The notes under the pieces were generated by a model. The model did not search any database. It saw nothing but the letters and a program-made list of their open reading frames with translations, and was not told where the DNA came from. Both the position numbers and the translations under genes were made by a program. A stretch of DNA of 64,000 bases from Podarcis pityusensis (lineage: Eukaryota): the NCBI GenBank assembly GCA_964106645.2, contig OZ067043.1. One strand, 5' to 3'. The stretch's first letter is position 1. Every line of letters begins with the position of its first letter. Below are positions 45,310 through 64,000 of the stretch, piece by piece.

Positions 45310-46740
45310 TTAGCGAGTCTGCACTTTACTCAGCAAGTTAACAATGGCTTCTTTGGTAAGGAACAAAGTCTCATTAGTATTTTGATTGCATACTTCAAAT
45401 AGAGAAGGCTCATCCAAAACCTTCTTGCCACCTATTATAACATAGGGGTACCCAAGTTTACTTGCATCCTTTAATCTTTTACCAATGGTGAATTGTGTCC
45501 GGTCATCCAGTACTATCTCCTCCTTAAGCCAAGGGGCTGCTTCAACAATACAGTCATATAAATCCTCCAGGAGCATTGCCCCTTTCTCCTCCTTGCTCCC
45601 TCTCTTTGGGGGAATAAGGCAGACTTGATATGGTGCAATGAGGCTTGGCCACCGAATGGCGTCCTCAGTAGAAAGCACCTCAATGGAGGCTGCAAGAATC
45701 CGAGTCACACCCAGCCCATAGCAGCCCATTTCAGCCGGAATATGCTTATTTTCTGCAGTGCGGACGGTAGCATTAAAAACAGAGGAGTATTTTGTGCCCA
45801 AGAAGAAGGTATGGCCAACTTCAATCCCTTTGTACTCAGCTAGTTTCCCTTTGCAAACTGGGCAATGCTTCTCATCTGGGTTTATCGTTTCCTCATTGGC
45901 TGCAAAGTCGCAGCCTGTGCACATCATCAATCGGTCCTCACCAACGTCAGCGGGCAGCTGGAATTCATGAGACATTGTCCCCCCGATGCTTCCAGTAGCT
46001 GCTTGGACTTTCACAAACCGAAGGCCTAAGTTGTTGAATATGTTGCCATAAGCGTTGCACACAAGGGCATAGGTCTGGAGGGCAGCTTCCTTGGAGGTAT
46101 CAAAGGTGTACATATCCTTCATATAAAATTCTCTGCCACGCAGCAACCCAAAGCGTGGTTTTGGCTCATCTCGAAACTTTCTTGTTACCTGGTACAGCAA
46201 GAGGGGAAGCTGCTTGTAAGACAAATGGCCTTGGGAAGCAATTAGGTCTGTGATGGCCTCTTCATGAGTAGGTCCTAGGCAGTATTCTTGATTGTGCCTG
46301 TCTGCCAGTCGTAATAGTTCACTGCCCATGAGTTCCCACCTTCCACTGGCTCTCCAGAGCTCTGCTGAGCTCAATGCGGGCATGTTCACTTTCTGACCCC
46401 CTATAGCCTGCATTTCTCGGTCTATCACTCTGATGAGCTTCTCCAGTGCTCGGACAGTGTAGGGCATATAGTGGAAGCAGCCGGGACTGGCTGGGTAGAT
46501 AAGTCCTGCTAGTAACATCAATCTCTGACTTTTACATGTCAGTTCACCTGGTTTGCTGGTTTGCTGTGATGCTATGCTATCCTCCCGCAGATTCATCGAC
46601 TGGAAGTGCTGGGATACACACTTTTGTCTTGCATGAAGATCACAATAAAACCTGCAACACTGTTGCTGCTTTTGGCACCAACCAAACCAATTTTTCAAAC
46701 CAGGAAGAATCGTTTTCCCTCTTCTGAGAAGCCCATCCAT
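45310..46740 (-). CDS. PARS2: Mitochondrial prolyl-tRNA synthetase, 476 aa, single coding exon
   Basis: Class II aaRS (bacterial-type ProRS) motifs SGRWELMGSELLRL, LGPTHEE, YQVTRKFRDEPKPRFGLLRGREFYMKDMYTFD, IEVGHTFFLGTKYS, MGCYGLGVTRI and WPSLIAPY. A splice acceptor (polypyrimidine-CAG) at 46776-46775 precedes the ATG at 46740. Confidence 0.96.
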   Translation of the reverse strand: MDGLLRRGKTILPGLKNWFGWCQKQQQCCRFYCDLHARQKCVSQHFQSMNLREDSIASQQTSKPGELTCKSQRLMLLAGLIYPASPGCFHYMPYTVRALEKLIRVIDREMQAIGGQKVNMPALSSAELWRASGRWELMGSELLRLADRHNQEYCLGPTHEEAITDLIASQGHLSYKQLPLLLYQVTRKFRDEPKPRFGLLRGREFYMKDMYTFDTSKEAALQTYALVCNAYGNIFNNLGLRFVKVQAATGSIGGTMSHEFQLPADVGEDRLMMCTGCDFAANEETINPDEKHCPVCKGKLAEYKGIEVGHTFFLGTKYSSVFNATVRTAENKHIPAEMGCYGLGVTRILAASIEVLSTEDAIRWPSLIAPYQVCLIPPKRGSKEEKGAMLLEDLYDCIVEAAPWLKEEIVLDDRTQFTIGKRLKDASKLGYPYVIIGGKKVLDEPSLFEVCNQNTNETLFLTKEAIVNLLSKVQTR

Positions 46741-47429
46741 TTCGAGACTCACAGATGAAGCTTCTCTTTCAAATCTGCAGGCAGAGAGAGAAAATAAAAG
46801 CAACTCATTTCGCATAAACAGATGCACATTTTATATCTAGCCAAAAGAGATTCCCCACATATTTTAGCTACTGTGAGAGCTGAATGCATTGAACACAGCC
46901 TGTTTGGCTAAACATGGGGCTGAATGATTCTAGCTGATTCAGTTAACTGGCAAATAAATGAGGAGTTTCTAGAAGAATGCGCTTCCCACAACTGCCTCAA
47001 ATGATGTTTAAGACCTGCTTCATCACCTTCAAAATGTATGCACAGGCACAAAAATATACATTTGCAATGCTCACACAACAGCTGTACAGCCCCACTTAAG
47101 GGTACACATCTGTACAGAAAAGGCGTAATGGCCCTTCCATTATCCCTGACCATCGTCCCTGACCCATCAGTCTGGGGCTGATGGGGCTGCACCCGGCAAC
47201 ACCTGCAGGGCCAGAGTCTTCCTCATCCCTGCTGCAATGCAAGAAGCTGCATGTTTTAATACCAATAATGAGCTAGCTTTTCCTATAGTTGCAAAGATAA
47301 CATTTGAAGAGCCACGAAAAGCAACCAAGTGTCTTCACGGTCCAAATTAAGAAGTTGTCCAAATCTGTTATTCTGCAAACGCCTCCAGAGACTTTTTGAG
47401 GAAGCAGGAAAAGAGAAATAAGAAATTCC

Positions 47430-48075
47430 CCTGCGCGTCCCCCAATTACATTGCTATTGTAACATTCCCGTCATTTTCACCACGAGCCACCTATCTCTAT
47501 GGTGCCTGCTTTGACATTTCTGCGAAGAGGGACGCCGGCGGATTGGGCGCAAAGTTGCAAGAGCTTCCTCGGGGGGAAGTCCCACCGAGCACAAGCAGGG
47601 CTTCCTTCCGAGAAAAAACACAAAAGCACTGGACTTGCACGAACCTCGCTGAACTGGAAGCGCAGCCGAGTCAAGTTTCATACGGAGCAGCTCCTTGAGA
47701 AGGAAAAGCGACCATAGGCGCCGCTGAAGTGCAGGACGCAGTTTATATCCCCGGGGAAGCCTGCCGGGCCAGACTCGTCCTTGCAACGGTCGCCGGCGTT
47801 ACCACTCTGCGCTGCAACTTTCCAGCTCTTGCAGCGCCCGTGGCAGAAACCACGCGGCGGCGGGACTGGACGAGCAACACAGTATGCAGCAGCTGCGCAT
47901 GCGCAGCAGCGATGCCCCGTCCCTTTCGGAACGGAGGCGGAACCATAGAGTTGAAGGAAACGAAGAAGAAAGAGCGACGCTCTTTCTCTCCCCCTCCGTC
48001 TCGGGCGTGCAGATGAAGTCCGCCAATAACCATGGCGATTCAGGTTCAGGCAGCCTCTTGTGACACGTGAAGAGG
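47430..48075 (-). promoter_or_regulatory. CpG island promoter / non-coding first exon of PARS2 with NRF1 palindrome
   Basis: CpG-rich. Perfect TGCGCATGCGCA at 47894-47905, CGGAA ETS-like cores at about 47927-47942, CCAAT and ATGGCG near 48023-48038, and a CACGTG E-box near 48064. Confidence 0.75.
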
Positions 48076-51019: not shown

Positions 51020-51100
51020 TGATCCCACCCTGTAAAATTATTCTTGCTGTGATTGGTTAGGTCAGTCTTTATATAGCCTTCAAGTATTTTATTGGGAGCG
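51020..51100 (+). promoter_or_regulatory. Putative CpG-poor core promoter of the LSS-like gene
   Basis: Inverted CCAAT (ATTGG 51052-51056), AGGTCA half-site 51059-51064 and TATA-like TTTATATAG 51068-51076, about 180 nt upstream of the ATG at 51255. Confidence 0.45.
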
Positions 51101-51254: not shown

Positions 51255-54200
51255 ATGTCTGATGGGACGTAAGTACATTGTGTGCAATCTATATGCTTTG
51301 ATTAGGATGATGGTTAAATAAAATAACAAAGTGTGCCAGTTGCTTGACTTAATTCATGTTGATTAAGCAAGCTTTATTGCAGGAGAAGTTCACAGAAATA
51401 AGATGGGAAGGGTAATTAACCTGATGTATTAAGGAATAAAAAGGCAGCAATTTGGGTTTTCTTTTTTCCTGATGATAATTTTTATTAATTTTCAATTACA
51501 ATCCAAAATAGCCTCATTTGCAACAATACCAAATTATAATACAGTTACTAATACCAATCATTCAAATACTGAATTATATAATTTAGGTGGCCCCCCACAT
51601 GCTAGATTTGATGGTTTGATGGTTTTCTTTATTTCTGTGTTCCAAAATCTTCCTGTGTGGTGTAGTGGTTAAGAGCGGTAGTCACGTAATCTGGGGAACC
51701 GGGTTCGCGTCTCCGCTCCTCCACCTGCAGCTGCTGGGTGACCTTGGGCTAGTCACACTTCTTTGAAGTCTCTCAGCCCCACTCACCTCACAGAGTGTTT
51801 GTTGTGGGGGAGGAAGGGAAAGGAGAATGTTAGCCGCTTTGAGACTCCTTAAAGGGAGTGAAAGGCGGGATATCAAATCCAAACTCTTCTTCTTCTTCTA
51901 ATTTCAATTAAATTCCGGTTAAAATAATCCCTTATACAACAACTGCAGTATTAATAACGTCTATTTGTGTTGACACATTAAATGATTTATAGAACTACAA
52001 GTGAGGCACTCAAACTATATCCTTGTTTTTCCTGTGTGTGGCAATTATTCTGTTCGTGGTGTTTCTTCCTGTCCTTGTAAAATGTTATGTCTATCTTTCC
52101 CCCATTGTTGCTGTTCTCCATCATGCCGTGCGTGGAGCTGATACAGTCATACCTCGGGTTGAATGCGCTTCAGGTTGAGCGTGTTTGAGTTGCATTCTGC
52201 GGCAACCCGGAAGCAAAGGAGCGCATTACTTCCAGGTTTCGCCGCTTGCGCATGCGCAGATGCTCAAAATGATGTCACGTGCATGCGCAGAAGCAGCGAA
52301 AAGCGACACGCGTGTGCGCAGATGTGCCATTGCTAGTTACGTTTGCTTCTAGATGCGAACGGGGCTCCGGAACGGATCCCATTCGTATCTAGAGGTACCA
52401 CTGTATCCCATTTTCCCCCAGAAAAGTCTCCATTGCTCTGTCCCGTGCTTCGTCGTTTTGCAGCTTTAACAACAGCTGTAAAAATCACTCTGTCCCAATA
52501 AATAACCTGTTTTCACCATTTTTCCTCTCAGCCTGGGAAGAAGAGTGGTCTGTCGAACTGCAGATGACTCATTAATGAACCTTATCAGTTACTTGGCAAG
52601 TTCACAGACTCCTTTCATCCTTCCATCCAACTGAAGATAAATGAGCAATTATACTTCCAATTAAATTAAATTCCAAGTCCTTTTAGCGTTATTCAGTTCA
52701 CTCCGTAGATAATAAAGGATGGGGAAGAGTCAGTTCTAAGTTTCCATTGTAAATCTTTTGCAAAATAGAGCTTCCCTCCCCTTTTCCTTTTTTTACAAAC
52801 ACAGTTTATATTCCATATCTATAATCCAGTTTCACCCCTCCTAACTTGTACATATATAATTTGAACTAACATTCAAGGGAGGGTTGCCGAATCATAAACA
52901 TAGAGAAGAAAACTTTATATCAAGAAGCCGTAGGCTCCCCCCCCCCCCCGTCTTTTGCACCAAATGAAATTTTCTCTCAAGTTCAAACCTTAACGACCTT
53001 TTTGCTGGTTCTGTTCCACAGTTTATGATCTCATTTCTTCTAGCATGCACCTGTACTTTAGTCCGCAATTTCTTGATACAAAAAAGTGTGAAAAATAGAA
53101 TGGAACTTTTTGATTGTGATTAGGAACAGAAATGAAAATTGGTGTAAAAAGCTTTTGTTGGATTTCTGGCAAAACAACCTGCAAAAACTAACTTGTAAGC
53201 CTTAGGTAATGGTCTTTCATTGGAAAGAGAAACAAGACAGGTGTGGCCTCTGATTCTCAACCCCCCAACGTACTGACGGTTTAGTTATAATAAATTTGCA
53301 ATAAAAGAGGAATGAGATGAAAATAACTATGATGTTACGTGAAGCTTAGCAAACACTATTTGATAACAGAAGGGGATAAGCAGAAGATGGGTTAAAAATT
53401 AATTTAAGTAAAGCAGAGTCTACAGTACATAAATAGTAAATCTTTTTGGAATTGAATTAGTAGTCCTTATTATTTGTCAATTATTGATTTCAAAAACAGA
53501 TTAATTAGTGGAGGCCAATGAAAGACTTATTAGAAAATTGCACCTAAATTTTCTAACATGAAGTAGTCTACTAGGACAGTCCTGTGCATGCTTACTCAGA
53601 AGTAAGGACCACTGTTTCACTGGGGCTTTTCTCCAGGAAAGGTGTGCAAGAGATTGCAGCAAGGAAACCTCCAAAGAGGTAATGTGAAAGACAGACACGT
53701 TAAAATCCATCATTTTCAAGTTTGAAAAGATATTGTGAAGTAGCTAAGAGAAGAAGGGGGGAGATGTTATGTTGAGGAGAAGACTTGGGTAAATGAACAG
53801 AAGTGGGGAGATTGGAAATTAAAGCTGTGATCCTATGCCAAATTATCTGAAAATAAGTCCTGTTGATCAATCTGGGACTTTTGTATAGGATTGCGTTCCT
53901 AAAAATACTACACTAAGGGAATCGGATATAAAAGAAATTCATAAAGTATCCCTGTTAACCTCTTTATGTTCTGAACAAATGTCTTTAACAACTGGGACAA
54001 AAATATGGTTGTAGAGAATAGGGAGTGTTTCCATAATGAGCTAGTTAGAAAAAGCAAAGGATCTATGGGTGTTACATGACTATGCCATACTCAGAGTAGA
54101 CTCGCTGAAATCAGTGGGCAAATTAGTCATGAATAGACCCACTGAAATCAATAGACATGTCAGTTCCTCACTTCTGGCTGGAAGGACCACAGAATGGGGT

Positions 54201-57200
54201 TCAGAATAACTTCCTGTGATAGGATAACAAACCGATAGTCTGCCTGCATGTTTCAAACTCCCCACCTCCTCTGTGTTCTTTGGTAGATGTCTGCGCAGAA
54301 GAAAAGGTGCACATGAAATAGAACCCAAAACTGATCTTACTCGCTGGCGATTCAGCTCTGTGGAAGGGCGGCAGAAATGGTACTACGTGGCAAGCAGTGA
54401 AGAATGTGCCCGTGAACAGAATGCACTCGAGGCTTACACTTTAGGGCTGGACACTGTAAGTGGCTTAATGATAACAGATGGTACAACACGGAAAGGCTAC
54501 AAAAGGAGCCCAGGGCATGAGGACTGCTGGCTTGGCCCTGCCTAGCGGCAGTTTCTCAAGGGCTGGGTCATTTTTCTTTTGGCTTCTCATCTTCTGACAC
54601 CTCAGTTAGGAACACAGGAAGCTTGGTGATTGCTTTCATGGAACTGTGGAAGGGATCATGAGGGTCATCTCCTCAAACCGCCTGCCACTTGGTGCTGTAC
54701 AACTGCAACTTGATAATGTCAGGGTTGAATATGAAACCCTACTTGAAAAAAGACAAGCCTGCAAGATGAATATGACAATCTGCAGGAAATACTGAAATAC
54801 ATAACTTGGTTATCACTTTCTACAAGGCAGCTTCTTCATGCTTGTTGCCTATAATGATGACTGAATTCATCTGCAAGCAGTTTGCGGCCTCAGTGTTTGG
54901 TTCTTAGCCTTGGAAAGGGAGTTGGACTACATGATCTTCTGGTCCGTCATATTCTATAGTTCTCTGATGTGAGAGCTCTGTGGTGTTCTCCTAGAGAACA
55001 GCCACTCTCTTGCTCTCAATGATCAATCTCCAGTATACTGTGCCTGATACTCATTTCCATGATGCACGGATGATGCATCTGCATGAGGCATTTTGATGTG
55101 CGTGAAAATACTGAGGCACATCAATCCAATATGCAGTTTGTTTGGATAAAGGCCTCTGACTGATGGCTGGATTTCTAAACAGTTGTGATATCCCATATTG
55201 TGAGATGTTGGCAGGTGTAGATTTCACTTGAGATGTGCTTGTAAAACATAGTTTTGGAACCGTCTCTCAGGGCTAAACCATCCAGTACATTGAATGACTT
55301 TTTGTATTTAACATGACTGTTGTTTTAAACCGAAACAAGTTCATGAGGGCCCAATCAGGATAGGGATTGGGGTGGGTGAGGAAGAGAGAGTTATCCCTTT
55401 CCCAGCCTGCCCATGTCTACAGGCAAATACAAATAACAGCTGGCGATGGGCGTTTCATTGAGACTGCTGCTAGGAGGGGAAGTGTTAAATGACACCTCCC
55501 CATCTGCCATGGTCCCATTCCTGACTACCCTTCCCTGCTATATTTATTTCTAAGTGACCAAATAGTTGCATGAAATGTAGCAGGACATTTAACACAATGC
55601 ATACTTTGTCTTGTAGATAGTCTGTTTAGTTTTTGTGCATTTCTCTTACTTTTCCTATTTTGTTTTACAGAGCAAGTTCTTTCCAGATTTGCCCAAAGTT
55701 AGCACCGCCCAGGAAGCAGTCCAGAAAGCGATTAAATTCTTCTCTGGCCTGCAAGCAGAAGATGGCCATTGGGCCATGGAGTGCTCTGGCGTTCTCTCTC
55801 TTGCACCAGGTACATGGACACTAGCGGGTTTACCACATATGCATTAACTGGCTAAGGAGGGCCTCCCTGTATATTTTCTATAAATTTGTTGATCTTCTTT
55901 TACCAGACAGACAGAAATAGGTTGATATTTGGAGAAACCTCTTAAACTGAGGCCTTCTTTTAAGAGCTATTATGCAGTGTGTGAATGTTCCTCGCTCGAG
56001 ACACTTCTCCACTCTCTGAAAACTTCTTTGATCTCAGTGTCATGAATGTCTTTTTCCATGCATGAGAGGCTAAACCTTGAACCCTCTTAATTCAGAAGGG
56101 AGTTTTTGTAACTAAGATATATATCCCTGTTATCTTCCATCACTACATAATTATTTCTGCTGACAGGAGTGTCAGGGGTTGACACTTAGTCTTCCATTAC
56201 CTTCCCTGGAAGTCTGATCCCTGGAAGATGTGTATGTTCTTCAAGCCAGATTGCCTTGGGTCACCTGCCTGGGAAATTCTTCATTCTCAGAATTTCCTAT
56301 AGTTAAATTTATATATATATTTAAATCCCTCTATTTAGGAAAATGAAGTCTAGCCTCTCTCACAAAGCAGAATACAGTGGTGCCTCACAAGACGAAATTA
56401 ATTCGTTCTGCGAGTTTTTTCGTCTTGCGAGTTTTTTCGTCTTGCGAAGCACGGTTTCCCAAAGTCTTCAAAATCACCAAAGTCTTCAAAAACCTCAGAA
56501 AAGGCTACCACACCGCGTGCTATGAGTTGCTCCTCGAAGTCACCCTGGGTATTAACGGTTTTAAGAAAAAGGAAACAAACTTGCAAGACGTTTTCGTTTT
56601 TTTCGTTTTTCGTCTTGCAAAGCAAGCCCATAGGGAAATTTGTCTTGTGAAGCAACTCAAAAAATGAAAAACTCTTTCGTCTTGCGAGTTTTTCTTCTTG
56701 CGAGGCATTCGTCTTGCGAGGTACCACTGTACTTATTCAGTATATCCTGAACAGGGGGATAATCCATTGAATCCATTGTGCAGGATACTGTCCATCGGTG
56801 GCATCATACAGCTGTATGGAGATGTGGTAGACCAGATGATTTAAATTTTTTCTTCCCCTTACAGTTAATCTTAATTATTATTTTTAACTGTCTTTACTGA
56901 AAAGTTTAATATTTCCTGTAAACCACTTAGTGGGATTACGTCACTGAAGTGGTATATAAATAAATAATAAAATTTGATTTGTGTGCAGATCAAGATGAGA
57001 GAGAAATTTGATTCAGTTTGCAGTTAAAGGTCTTATTAGCACTTTCAGAAACAGTTTGAGAACTGAAACACAGGCATTCTTTGAAGTTCGCTCTTCACTG
57101 ATTTTTGTAGTGCATATCCCCAGCCAAGTAGTGTGTACAATGGCATATACTAGAGTAAAAACATAAATCTTGTTATGTTTGACCTTTTTCTTCTGTTTCA

Positions 57201-60200
57201 AGATGGTAAAAACAAACAATGGGGTACAAAAGCATAAGTTACGTTTCGATATCCAAACAGGCGGTTTATTGGCAGATCATACCAAAGTTAAGATTGTCAA
57301 GTACTACACATCTTCTTCTTCTTCTTTTTTAACCAAACAGCTATTTTGATGTCATGTTATGCTGCCAAGATCTCACTACCAGAAGAGGTTGAGAGAGAGC
57401 TCCTGCGCTACATCCTCTCAAAACAGCTTCCAGATGGTGGCTGGGGCCTGTAAGTAGTCCAAGGAGGGTGTGAGCTTCTCTAGAGTGGCCTAGGGAGAGA
57501 TGTTCTAATGCTGCATATCTTTGTCTTGGGCTGGTCCATGATGCAATTCCCCCATGAAGGCTTCTTTAAATCACTTCTGCATTCTGCTGTCTTTTGACTG
57601 TGAGCCTTTTATTTGCAATACTCACCATGTGAACTGGGCACCAGGGTAGATGACCAGAATGCAAGCTGGGCTCAGCATGTACTGAAGTTGCCCAGCTGTG
57701 GCGGAGAAAGATAGAATTCTGGCATGAGGAGTGGAGAGAGGCAACAATAATGAAGACATAATATCTGACATAGCTATTGCCTTTGAAAAGCACCATCTCT
57801 AGGAAGTATTACTATTGATAAATGGTGTGGTGAGGCCAGGTTGCCTCCATCCAAATGTATCCTGTCAAACCACAAAATGGATTGGAGTTTGACTGAGCTT
57901 TGAATCTGAATTCTTAGTAGCATGGTATCAACTTTATTTAGCTGGAATGGAATTTCAACTGGTACTCAGGTTGTATGAGCTGCTTTCAAGCCCATGCTGC
58001 CTCATGGAAGGAAAGATTTCAAAGCACCAAGTGCCCTTCATTAAGGCATTACTTTTTTAAAAAGGTAATAGAAAACAAAAGAAGGTATTCTGCGGTGTCC
58101 CGGCTAATGGATAGCTGGGTATGGGTGAGGCAAATTCTCAGAAAAGCTTTTGAATTTAAGGTAATACACCAGAAGAATGGAAACTAAACAATTCAAAGAG
58201 ATTTCCAGACCTCTGGACTCACTGGTCCACTTTCTAATGGCTCTTTGATCTCTCTTTATTGTAGCCACCTTAAAGAACAGTCAACAGTATTTGGCACAAC
58301 CTTTAGCTACATAGCTATGCGAATCCTTGGACTTGGGCCTGACCATCCAGATGTAGTGCGGGCTCGGATAAATCTCCACAAGAAAGGTAAGGCAGAAATC
58401 TCCGCCAGGGCTGGATCAATCCATTTTACTGGAGTGTAGTGCCCAGGTAAAGCTGGGGGCCCTGATGTAGTTATTTGGGAGCATCTTCCTATTCTGCCTC
58501 CCCCCCCTTCCTCCCTTCTTTTGTGGGTCCTTTTAGAAATCACCATAGACTGATCATAGAAATTGTGTGTTTGTCCCAAATAGAAGATGCTGGTCATATC
58601 TTCCCTCCCATTTTCCCTTCTCTAAAATTTATATTGGGAACTCTTGGGATGGGGGACATGGACCTGCCCTTTTATGCCACTCTGTAATGCACAATATACA
58701 GCGATAAAATTTTATTTTACTGTATTCTTAGAAATACAAAGAATGAGGTGAATTATAACCTCCCTTTTGCAGCAGCATTTTGCGGTGAACCCCCCTCTTA
58801 ACTACTGCTTAATCTTTTTGGTTTTATAAAGAAAACTCTCTGGTACTTGGAGACTTAGGAAAGTTAAACAGGGAAAGGTTTTTATTTTACAGAAACAAGG
58901 TGATAAATGCACAGCTTCTTTTCAGTTATTTCACTTCAGTTCCTAAAACTTAAATGAGTAGATGTTACAGCTTTGGCCTTAATACCTGGGGTCTTAAATA
59001 AGGTGGTGCTTGCTGTCAGTTTCCCAACTTTCTGTAAATCACACCCCTGAGGCTCTAATAGGATTACAGGTGATCACCCTCCAACTGGTTTGGGAATCTG
59101 CTTTTTCTCTAGAAGTTCTGTCACCTACTTTCTGAACTGGGACCCCAAGTAGAGTGTCCCCTCATAACTCTACTTATCCTGTCCCCAATTCAGCTTCCCA
59201 GTTTTTCTCTTGTCTGTACACTCCTAAAAAGACACTAATTAATGTCTTTCAAACTAAACTCAGCAGACTTCCATCTCTGGTTACAGATATTTTCCTCAGA
59301 GTGGAGCTATACACCTATCTAGCTGAACTCCAAGAACGCCAACTTTCAACTCTTCTCTCCCCAACTGTCTCTACGGCTTTCTCTTTTTCCTCCCAAAGTG
59401 CGGACTCCACACACACACACACCCCTGCCCAGCTAGTTGTATCCACAGCCACTCAGAAGGAGGCTACAGCTCAGCTCTGGTGGAATTCCAAGGCACTTCA
59501 TCACTAAACTCTGGTCTAGCTGAGCTTTCTGTCACACATTCACATAAGGTTTAATGGAACTAGGAGGTGAGGTGGTTCCTTCTGCATGGATACAGTCTGA
59601 GAAATACATAGCATATGTTTTCAGGATGATCAGGGCATTCACCCTGTCTCTGGGTAGCTTGGGTAGTTATAGGAAAAATGAGGAGGGAACTCTTTGGGTT
59701 CAGCCAGTTCAGAAACACTGCAGTGAGCATAGCTTAAAGTTGTGCAACTGCTACTAGACTTCCCCTTCAATGTGTGGAGTGTGGCCGGGCCAGGCAATGA
59801 GGGTGTGATGGGGCAGGGGTGGGGGGACTGGGCCAGTAAGCCCAGTTCTCTTTCTCCCCCTCGTGTGATGAGGACATAAAACCTGCATAGAGGTAGTGTT
59901 GGGTGGTATTAAATCTGGACACCACAGCAGTTCTTATACTCATGTCTCCACCTGATATGGGTAAGAAGAAATCTGAAAAACCACATGCCATATGGCTCTC
60001 TCTAAATAATAAGAACAATCCTAGAAAAAAGAAAGCTAGGATTAAATGTCTTTGTCGTGTTCCTGTACAATAGAGAGTCTTTCTAAGCACCCATTTCCCT
60101 TTTTATAGTTTTGCAAAGTATCTTCACAGCAAGGCAATAATCATATCTAGGTTCTCATTGTAAATTTATTTGGCTTTGTCCCCTTCAGTCTACAGAAGCA

Positions 60201-61388
60201 AAGATGTTGATAATTCTCTTTCTAGGTGGCGCTCTTGGAATCCCTAACTTGGGCAAAGTTTGGCTGGCCATTATGAATTTGTACAGCTGGGAGGGAATGA
60301 ATTCACCATTTCCCGAGTTGTGGTATGTGTCTGAAAGTTTACTGATCCCCACCCCACGCCACCAATCATGAACCCCCCCCCCCCAAATGTCTACAGTGTT
60401 GCACAGTAGACAAATTCTTTATTAAATAACAGTGACTTGGAAATTGAAATTAATCCATATTAACCTTCACCACTCTCAGAGGTCCAAAGAGGCCTGGGCT
60501 AGTTCCAGTTTTTGAGGCCCCTAGCCATAAAAAAAAAAAGATAAGAATGACAACTCTGGAAAACAAAATAAGGCACCAACAATATAGTGGGGGATTATTG
60601 CTTTGTTTGTTATTATGTTACCGGGTTTTGTGTTTTTATACTTTAAATTGCCCTGATCCTCAGATGAAGGGCAATATAACCTGCTTTTAGTGTTACCACT
60701 ACATCCAGGATTCCTGACATTGTCTTCCATGAACCTGTTTCTTCCTTCTTTCTGAAATAGGCTGTTTCCTACATGGCTGCCGGGACATCCCTCGACATAC
60801 TGGTGTCACGCTCGCCATATCACCCTCGCGATGAGCTACTGCTATGCCACTCGCCTGACTGTAGAAGAAGATGAATTGATCCATAGTCTAAGACAGGCAA
60901 GACAACATTCTCCAAACATCCCACCATCCTCGGTCAAAGTGGGACCCTCATACTTCCTTGGATCTGCACTTGGGGAATTGCTTGCTTGTATCTGACAGGG
61001 AGAAGGCTGAACTGGATGTCTTATTTTCCATTTAAGGCAGAAGTCAAGCTCAGAGCATCGGTGTTTCAAAATGCCATGGGAATATTTGTTTTGGAGAGAG
61101 GTGGGGGCATGTAAACATGCCACTTGGACATCCCTATTCCATAGGGGAGGGCAACTTTGGGAGGGTAGAATTTGGAGTGGAGATGGTGCACATGGCATCA
61201 CCCTGCCAAGTCACATAAGTCTCTCTCCATTCATGCTCTTATTTTAATTTATTTTAATGGCTCTGTGCTTCCTGTGCCACAGAGTATTCATTAACTCTTT
61301 GCCTCTTCTCGTAAAAACTGGTGAACAACATCAATATTGCCTCCTACATCACAGCAATACCACAATCTCCCTTTTTTATGCTTCTTTT

Positions 61389-61432
<44 letters not shown>

Positions 61433-63523
61433 TTTCCTCCCCTTTCTTTTGGTGTGGTAAAAGGAGCATTCTTCTCCCCTCTTCTGTACTACCAGAAAAA
61501 CAAATCAATGAAGAACTGTTGAACCATTAATCTCCTGTGGAGTACCCTCCTCTTTCTCCTCTAATGTTTTATTTATTTATTATTTATTATAACATACTTT
61601 TTTCCATTTAAGTATCAAAATGGTGATGACGTAGACTATTGCTCATGAAAGCTGATGCCATAACACAGGGAGGGGAAAATGCTAAAATGAATTTGCTGGG
61701 GTTTTTTTAAAGCTCTGTAATGACAGTTGTCAAGTACACTAATACCCTGCTTCTTCTTTACTATGAAAGTCATTTCACTTCATGGTTTCCTTCTAGGAGA
61801 TTTATGTGGAGGACTTCTCCACCATTGATTGGCCAGCCCAGAGGAACAATATTTATGAAGCCGATTTGCATGCTGCACACAGCTGGATGCTGGATGCTGC
61901 TTTTGGTGAGTGATTTTGGAATTGGCAAGTCTTTTTCCAGGAGTTCAGGCCTCCAACGTAGGTTTCCTAGGGTTTAGTTGGCACAGAGAAAGAGATTTCT
62001 GTTGGTATAGGCAAACACTTTTCATCAGAGGATATCCATGGAAACACACAACATTTTCCAAGTTTCGTATTATCATATGTAGCAAGCAAATACTTAGCCA
62101 ATTACAAGGACAAGGGATATTGAATCACACTGTGAAGACAGCCTGTGGGATCTCTCACACGATCTGAATTGTGATTTCTACCCCGCCCATTGCTTTTACA
62201 GTGTGAATTGGGATCCATTGTTGATCAGTTAAGGAAGAACAAGATATGTAACTACTTGATGCAGGGGTGCCAACAGGATTATCTGGGTCCAATGCATTGT
62301 ACCTTGATTGGGCTCTCTGACTCACTTGCCAAAGAGAACGCAGATCTGCATAAAATGTGTGTGTGTTGTGTAACATGCAAATTTGTGTCCTCTTTTGCGG
62401 GTAAGGTGGAAGGCCCACAAATGAAGAAGGGCATGTTTTGCTTCTTTACATTCTCATAGTTTGGTGGCCCTACTGATCCCAATGAGAGCTAGTGGGAGGG
62501 TCCCAGCAGCAGTTTTATGGTGCTTAATGACCCCCCCCCATTTGCTTCCCAGTGAACCTTAAAATGATCAAACTGTTTCATTCCATTTCTCTAGATGTAA
62601 CCTTGCCCAAGCCAAAGGAGAAAATCTGGCAGGGATTGTGATTTTGGCTCTTCAATTTTGGGGGTGGGGGTGGGTCCAGGGTGGAGGTTTGTTGGGAAAG
62701 ATTTTGGGAGGGGATCTGCAAAAGGTTCATGGAAGTTGGGGGTAAATGAAAAGAAGAAAAAAACCAAATGACCCCAAACAACTGGTGCCCACCCGTGATA
62801 AACCCCTTCACTCACACCCATGTTCTTTTGCAGACCCCCCCCCCCAAAAAAATCATATTTGAAATTAGGGGCTGAAATCCTGCCTCTGTTTTGAACCAAA
62901 ATATATTTCAGAAGCAAGTGCCATTGAATTCAATGGCGCCCTCTTCCGGGTAATTGCATGGAGGATTGCAGCCCCAAACACATGAGGAAGATAGAACTGC
63001 ATTAACACGATTGCGATGTTCATAGTGACTCTCTTATTCCTTCTGCAGCTACCTTCAATTTGTATGAGAGATACCATTTCACCAGTTTCAGAAAGCAAGC
63101 CATTGCGGAAATGTATGAGCAAATCAAGGCTGACGACATATTCTCAAACGCCACCAATTCTAGCCCGGTAGGTCCTTTGTGAAGAAAAAAATTGTACTGG
63201 GAACAAATTCCTTTTGATGACAGCATATACTCATTCTCCTGAGGAAGCTTTGCTTCAAAAACCAAACAGAGAGCTATATTTGTGGCAATCTTGTTCTGCC
63301 CGCTTGAGTTTCTGTGTTTGGCTGGTGAGATAGACAGGTAGTCGTGTGGCAGATGAGAGTGTTAAGCATGCAGGTATAGCAGAGGGGAATTCCTAACTGG
63401 AATGATATTCTCTTTTGTCCTGCAGACTTGTAAAGCGTTTCATGTGCTAATAAGCAGGTATGCTGATGGAGCCGATTCTCCAGCTTTTCAAGAACATATC
63501 TCCAGGATCTATGACTACCTTTG
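51255..63523 (+). CDS. Oxidosqualene cyclase, lanosterol synthase-like (divergent LSS paralogue); exons 1-10, gene continues beyond the window
   Basis: Exons 51255-51268 (MSDGT), 54287-54455, 55671-55809, 57341-57449, 58265-58386, 60226-60322, 60761-60896 (GC donor), 61797-61905, 63049-63167 and 63426-63523 total 1112 nt and are all in frame. Protein [26 protein letters not shown]...GRQKW...LQAEDGHW...[10 protein letters not shown]...STVFGT...RILG...YSWEG...HPSTYWCH...IDWPAQRNN...[14 protein letters not shown] is colinear with LSS residues 1-370. Confidence 0.93.
51652..51899 (+). mobile_element. tRNA-derived SINE (Squam3-like) in LSS-like intron 1
   Basis: A-box tggtgtagtggt, B-box-like ggttcgcgtctcc, core gggtgaccttgggctagtcac...ctcagccccactcacctcacag, L2-like 3' end and (CTT)n tail. 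Confidence 0.8.
52144..52403. mobile_element. Tc1/mariner-type MITE
   Basis: TA-cagtcatacctcggg ... ctagaggtaccactg-TA. Confidence 0.75.
56375..56729. mobile_element. Tc1/mariner-type MITE with internal TTCGTCTTGC repeats
   Basis: TIRs cagtggtgcctcacaagacgaa / ttcgtcttgcgaggtaccactg with TA TSD; several subterminal ttcgtcttgc motifs. Confidence 0.85.
61386..61433. repeat. (CTTT)n microsatellite
   Basis: tttctttctttc... Confidence 0.9.
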
Positions 63524-64000
63524 GTAAGCCTGGCATATGTATTCAAACCCATCTTTGTAGAATCCTGAACATGGTCTTGCATAAGTGTGCTTTTGCAGAC
63601 CTGGATCTTTCCTCAAACCAAGGTCAATCGGACTAGGAAACGTAAATGGTGTGTACACCTGTGAAAGCCGTAGTATGTGCACACATGAGCACAGATGCTC
63701 AGATGGCAGCTTCATTACTAGGAGTTCTGAGAGGGTGCGGGGGACCAGCAATGGCATGCACACTCTGTAAAGATCTCTGCCTCTGACGTGAACAACACTG
63801 TGCAAATGCAGCTTGCAGTGCAGTAAGAAAAAATCACCTTGTTGTGTTTTAAGCTGCATATGTGAACATATCCTTTTTTGCAGCATAGGTGGAACTCAGA
63901 AAGGTGTCATGCACACCTGCGTCCCACTCATTGTGTTGTCTGGAAGAGATTTCAGGGAGATTTTGCTTTTTGGCTATTCTTAAAGCCTATTCTAGACTTG

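Follow-up and report, generated by a model that had tools for sequence, protein, structure and literature searches.

A remodelled paralogue of lanosterol synthase in a lizard genome: an old, selected gene that may encode a neofunctionalised oxidosqualene cyclase

Introduction

Sea cucumbers apart, all animals are said to have one oxidosqualene cyclase (OSC) gene (PMC9236903), a view contradicted by an old, selected and pocket-remodelled second OSC in a reptile. Such a gene, a paralogue of lanosterol synthase (LSS), lies within a 64,000-nucleotide stretch of contig OZ067043.1 of Podarcis pityusensis (the window, throughout). A reading made from the sequence alone had drawn attention to a Cys codon at the position of human Tyr98, and had proposed that loss of this Tyr could permit all-chair folding or truncated cyclisation, a convergent change of product class. 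The finding presented here is the gene as a whole, of which Y98C is one part. A literature search returned no account of a squamate or reptile LSS paralogue, most subscription papers lying outside its scope; the gene may already stand in public annotations under the name "lanosterol synthase-like".

The segment at human Tyr98

Exon 3 of the paralogue gives an ungapped alignment with human LSS over residues 62-106 (PDB 1W6K, E 2.5e-10), and because of this alignment the TGC codon listed in Table 1, translated from the + strand, corresponds to human Tyr98, as had been claimed. The replacements said to accompany it were likewise recovered: G99S, P101V and F103S are seen in the alignment to human LSS, and G107A is encoded by the junction codon GCT. 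G96M, D97E and L105A extend the list for this exon, while T95A was rejected as a genuine change, Ala being found at 95 in most vertebrate LSS. Residues 97-103 read ECSGVLS in the paralogue, as compared with DYGGPLF in canonical vertebrate LSS. Since Y98, G99, P101 and F103 are each invariant (at least 97%) in 55 full-length fish LSS, their replacement here is not a matter of chance.

The proposal would have been refuted had canonical squamate LSS carried the same residues. Anolis LSS, however, keeps AGDYGGPLF; its motifs read AGDYGGPLFLLP, IPSWGKFWL and WCHCRQVYLPM, and those of alligator, plover and Xenopus are likewise canonical (PMC9236903 supplement, machine-read text). DYGG is thus kept in the canonical LSS of Anolis, alligator, bird, frog and fish, and the possibility that the gene is itself the canonical LSS orthologue was rejected, given that Anolis LSS retains motifs which the paralogue has lost. 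Of the 189 proteins compared that contain a DGHW motif, Tyr occupies this position in 174 and Cys in P0002 alone; because canonical LSS keep Tyr and P0002 alone shares the Cys, Y98C is particular to this paralogue. A rainbowfish protein named "lanosterol synthase-like" (P0138; XP_041857392.1, Melanotaenia boesemani) has Ser at 98 and Ile at 103, its other motifs being canonical, and a second record falls in the same cluster.

An assembly error at the Cys codon was considered and rejected. The window contains no N letters, a contig from run X1 (an independent run, or possibly the source sample) spans 55739-56398 with 0 differences and, as a stronger check, the distant orthologue that encodes P0002 (L001) carries identical TGC-TCT codons.

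Family membership, origin and extent of remodelling

Homology was searched exon by exon. Human LSS is the best match in the PDB for exon 3 and for four of the five other exons searched; exon 9 also matches LSS there, ranked behind a repetitive lectin. This homology, together with the QW motifs in exons 3 and 4, places the gene in the OSC family. All ten exons seen are open over 1,112 nt, with proper phases and sense junction codons, and nine of the ten have GT donors, exon 7 alone having GC (intron 7 starts at 60897-60898). Because exon lengths and phases match the human LSS pattern, the gene is read as a DNA-level duplicate of LSS, introns included; a retrocopy was rejected, the introns having been kept. 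Duplication from a sauropsid LSS fits the data, since AMRILG and EEDELI are shared with Anolis LSS rather than with fish or human LSS (by eye, in machine-read text).

Over exons 3-10 the paralogue is 56% identical to the fish LSS consensus. When positions invariant at 97% or more among the 55 full-length fish LSS are considered, 64 of 183 are changed in these exons, as compared with a median of 0 and a maximum of 5 in fish LSS themselves; judged by these sites, the remodelling is on a scale unusual for an animal OSC. Relative to vertebrate LSS (EC 5.4.99.7; PDB 1W6J/1W6K), with which it shares exon lengths and phases, QW motifs, W230, H232 and P337, the paralogue has Y98C, G99S, P101V, F103S, W192L, C233A, Y237T, I335S, G336S, I338T and S339C. 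Of these, W192, C233, Y237 and I338 are pocket and channel residues. V236 is changed as well, and in a docking to 1W6K (PMC8911567) the ligand is contacted by W192, C233, V236 and I338. Four pocket aromatics have been lost (Y98, F103, W192, Y237) and the 333-339 loop has become polar. Kept amid this change are W230, P337, both QW motifs and His232, the partner of Tyr503 in the LSS dyad, Tyr503 itself lying outside the window.

Age, selection and further copies

The orthologue L001 is a 2.5 kb contig of SRR32478113 (35% GC) holding exons 3-5, the introns of which are unalignable to those of the window. Its motif reads HWPAECSGVLTLAP, within the stretch HWPAECSGVL; E-C-S-G-V-L is identical in the two genes, the codons for E, G and V differing only synonymously. 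G107A is absent from L001. Across 119 codons the two are 75% identical, with dS of about 1.5, dN of 0.14 and dN/dS of 0.09 (bootstrap 0.04-0.18), dS being near saturation and the estimate accordingly rough. Because the new motif is shared with L001 at such a dS and dN/dS, it is, on this comparison, old and held by purifying selection, and for exons 3-5 neutral decay was rejected as its origin given the dN/dS of 0.09.

L001 itself carries a 1-nt deletion in exon 4 (L001 1213-1320) and, in exon 5 (2145-2269), a 3-nt insertion and a TGA stop. Despite its low dN/dS, this copy has evidently been lost, and it probably died late. That the Podarcis gene, too, was formerly functional and is now dying, with lesions beyond the window, could be argued from the state of this orthologue, from the GC donor at intron 7, from the lack of RNA evidence among the runs searched, and from the existence of a second similar copy which could make this one redundant. 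We nevertheless regard such a fate as distinctly improbable, in that every one of the 10 exons seen has an open frame and the proper phase across a full 1,112 nt, and GC-AG introns are a normal minor class.

The second copy is indicated by sequencing runs X1 and X4, each of which yields a second contig that covers 55555-55885 and shows 38-45 differences and 10 gaps, and by a further divergent contig of run X1 over 57761-58116. Being about 83-86% identical to the window, these contigs are too divergent for alleles and therefore indicate one or more additional copies of the paralogue in this lineage.

Other searches for homologues gave little. Exon 3 alone gave no match, a search by fish LSS gave fish sequences only, and a search by an exon-3 alignment gave P0002 as the only close match; a metagenome scan, some loci of which may be host or human DNA, gave no match above 57% identity, and the ESM Atlas gave generic cyclase clusters only. 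One match, P0047, resembled a fragment of a human exon and was set aside. The contigs encoding P0003, P0019 and P0049 were rejected as orthologues, Tyr being kept in each. The first of these (L002) has a vertebrate-like exon 3 and shares KFF, KFFS and a changed residue 96 (Glu) with the paralogue; it is possibly an intermediate or sister lineage.

Implications of Y98C for cyclisation

Three lines of comparison bear on whether loss of Tyr98 marks an all-chair cyclase. Firstly, contrary to what had been supposed, the Tyr is not a constant feature of protosteryl-type enzymes: cucurbitadienol synthases have Leu here, and the Arabidopsis cycloartenol synthase variant AtCAS Y118L makes cucurbitadienol and cycloartenol, both from the protosteryl cation, a change its authors call permissive (10.64898/2026.05.26.727834). 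In the same work G116, Y118 and I365 separate cucurbitadienol from cycloartenol synthases; by motif count these equal human 96, 98 and 335, all three of which are changed in the paralogue. The likeness to cucurbitadienol synthases lies in these positions, in the non-Tyr residue at 98 and in the retention of His232, whereas the plant enzymes have Leu rather than Cys, arose independently from cycloartenol synthase, and have no reported changes at W192 and Y237.

Secondly, the statement that dammarenyl-type plant cyclases have a non-aromatic residue at this place holds: N, H, T or S occurs in named beta-amyrin, lupeol and dammarenediol synthases, the motif of which (assigned by protein names) is P-A-E-x-(A/S/T)-G, and PDB 8J5Z reads PAENGGVS. 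Cys shares this trait, and the paralogue resembles these enzymes in E-x-(S/G/A)-G and in a small polar residue at 98. Elsewhere it is the reverse of them. Dammarenyl-type cyclases usually have Tyr for His232, Cys or Ser for Pro337, and W192 kept; among the plant non-Tyr examples compared here, H232 is replaced by Y, F or D, P337 by C, and W192 is kept wherever the sequence extends to it. Cycloartenol and cucurbitadienol synthases are characterised by His at 232, most amyrin and lupeol synthases by Tyr (MWCHCR vs MWCYCR; PMC13657253). The paralogue reads YWCHAR, keeping His232 rather than being of the MWCYCR/MLCYCR type, and keeps Pro337 rather than being of the GCVEK type, a region covered in two plant examples only. 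By these markers its signature matches neither the protosteryl nor the dammarenyl class.

Thirdly, there are accounts of the residue itself. Work by Thoma in 2004 reportedly credits Tyr98 with enforcing the B-ring boat, and Tyr99 mutants of yeast Erg7 reportedly give chair-boat tricyclic isomalabaricatrienols. Yeast Tyr99 has also been described as stabilising cations during B/C ring formation (PMC8944845). A search of the literature found no paper directly on Tyr98.

Convergent all-chair folding, dammarenyl or malabaricanyl, would draw on the reported role of Tyr98, on the resemblance of HWPAECSGVL in L001 and of E-C-S-G in the window to plant P-A-E-N-(A/S/T)-G, and on the paired D97E, which is also plant-like and is not listed in the cucurbitadienol comparison. 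It is nonetheless unlikely, given that AtCAS Y118L and natural cucurbitadienol synthases remain protosteryl, and that His232 and Pro337 are kept and W192 lost where plant non-Tyr proteins show the opposite. Equally unlikely is the wider proposition of a specialised triterpene synthase in a vertebrate: a reptile LSS duplicate which, having long ago acquired the plant dammarenyl-type motif at 96-101 by convergence, would make an all-chair or other non-sterol triterpene scaffold, with copies gained here and the gene lost elsewhere. Since AtCAS Y118L stays protosteryl and His232 and Pro337 are kept, Y98C alone is no indicator of all-chair folding; a cyclisation that is truncated or re-routed is the better fit. 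Of the product-class change proposed from the sequence, an altered product thus appears plausible and truncation agrees with the comparison, while for all-chair folding the support is weak. Reversion of C98 to Tyr alone would probably reveal little, since six or more further positions in the pocket are changed.

A candidate neofunctionalised cyclase

That the product would be something other than lanosterol is, in the broad sense, rather probable. The narrower reading favoured here, of a neofunctionalised and active cyclase with truncated or re-routed products, is put forward tentatively, its chances being a little short of even. On this reading LSS would have been duplicated at the DNA level, introns included, into a site next to PARS2, and the alpha-barrel fold kept while the middle and far substrate pocket was rebuilt. 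Asp455, which lies beyond the window, would still open 2,3-oxidosqualene; the residues that surround rings B-D and the side chain, being smaller and more polar, would make a roomier pocket, so that cations at C8, at C13/C14 or in the protosteryl rearrangement would no longer be steered to lanosterol. The enzyme would then release products that are either truncated, with one to three rings, or re-routed within the chair-boat series, perhaps after quenching by water, Y98C being one permissive change among several and not a lone switch. More speculatively, the role could be tissue-restricted, for instance in skin or gland lipids.

Activity and product are what we infer, and several observations weigh against them. 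Trp387, Phe444, Asp455, Tyr503, Trp581, Phe696 and the DCTAE motif all lie beyond the window, and the many lost aromatics could equally abolish cyclisation. Changes affect 11 of 14 pocket positions (p 0.0007) on a list compiled partly from background knowledge once the data had been seen, and 4 of 7 (p 0.2) on the independent docking contact list (PMC8911567), such that enrichment of changes in the pocket is suggestive rather than established. The sole orthologue found is broken, which by its sequence makes the gene dispensable in at least one lineage, and the RNA runs searched hold no match to the stretch, a result that does not demonstrate silence.

Consistent with some of these points, the protein may have ceased to be an OSC and be kept by selection as a lipid-binding pseudo-enzyme or for another isoprenoid substrate: Y98, F103, W192 and Y237 are lost, the 333-339 loop is polar, the catalytic Asp is outside the window, and purifying selection requires just some function. 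The retention of W230, H232 and P337 despite heavy local change suggests continued cation chemistry, however, and this alternative, though the foremost of those weighed, is itself not likely. Least probable of all is that the gene still encodes a lanosterol synthase, slower or leakier and expressed in some specialised tissue. In its favour, the lanosterol deprotonation dyad retains its His232, other OSCs of the His type also show C233A, and the rainbowfish protein, LSS-like by record name, has Ser at 98; yet one pocket difference sufficed for a new product in sea cucumber enzymes, whereas here no fewer than seven positions at or near ligand contact differ, all of them invariant in fish LSS.

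Those sea cucumber enzymes, the parkeol and lanostadienol synthases, are the closest animal parallel to the neofunctionalised cyclase favoured here, being likewise duplicates of LSS, in tandem copies, with a changed product (PMC9236903). The pair differ from LSS by one residue within 5 A of lanosterol, at position 444, and LSS has been lost (PMC9236903). The paralogue, by comparison, has many pocket changes, its position 444 falls past the window end, and squamates (Anolis) have a canonical LSS. Among vertebrates the gene would be the first candidate for making non-sterol triterpenes endogenously. It also provides a natural test of Tyr98, which may set the conformation of the B ring or act in later steps only.

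Gene structure and surroundings

The features of the locus are collected in Table 1. No exon 11 was found between exon 10 and the window end at 64000, and no homologous locus reaching exon 15, which holds the DCTAE motif (Asp455, Cys456) past that end, was found.

Table 1. Features of the paralogue and its surroundings
Feature	Position	Strand	Remarks
MROH-like HEAT-repeat gene	about 19000-42000	-	between TTC4 and PARS2
Class II tRNA synthetase, single long open reading frame	45310-46827	-	neighbour, divergently oriented
TATATA (at 51070) between two ATTGG (inverted CCAAT) boxes	51052-51095	+	CpG-poor; ~185 nt before ATG
Exon 1, coding part	51255-51268	+	14 nt from ATG; GT donor
Exon 2	54287-54455	+	169 nt, open
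Exon 3	55671-55809	+	139 nt, open, AG/GT bounded; QW motif and position 98
Rewritten segment past first QW motif	55764-55809	+	G96M, D97E, Y98C, G99S, P101V, F103S, L105A (human numbering)
Cys codon TGC at human LSS Tyr98 position	55782-55784	+	single transition from TAC
Exon 4	57341-57449	+	109 nt, open; QW motif kept
Exon 5	58265-58386	+	122 nt, open
Exon 6	60226-60322	+	97 nt, open; S191N, W192L, F195V
Exon 7	60761-60896	+	136 nt, open, GC donor; W230, H232 kept; C233A, V236I, Y237T, P239A
Exon 8	61797-61905	+	109 nt, open
Exon 9	63049-63167	+	119 nt, open; I333T, S334N, I335S, G336S; P337 kept
Exon 10	63426-63523	+	98 nt, open; I338T, S339C, N343H; final exon inside window

The paralogue sits beside PARS2, an MROH-like gene and TTC4, all three upstream on the - strand, the synthetase being one that we take to be PARS2. 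The canonical LSS site, linked to MCM3AP, is probably a different one; human TTC4 and PARS2 are adjacent and convergent. A CpG island lies at 47600-48000 near the PARS2 start, unlike the CpG-poor start of the paralogue, itself a difference from vertebrate LSS, where the TATA/CCAAT cluster is a possible promoter, boxes of this kind in CpG-poor DNA giving only a hint of tissue-restricted expression.

Two minor observations concern the gene body. Intron 3 contains a 357-nt insertion of a high-copy repeat at 56373-56729, not present in organisms B, C and D. At 60884, within the third-last codon of exon 7, all four runs have G at full depth where the window has T (His to Gln); Gln is the human residue, and the difference reflects either polymorphism or assembly.
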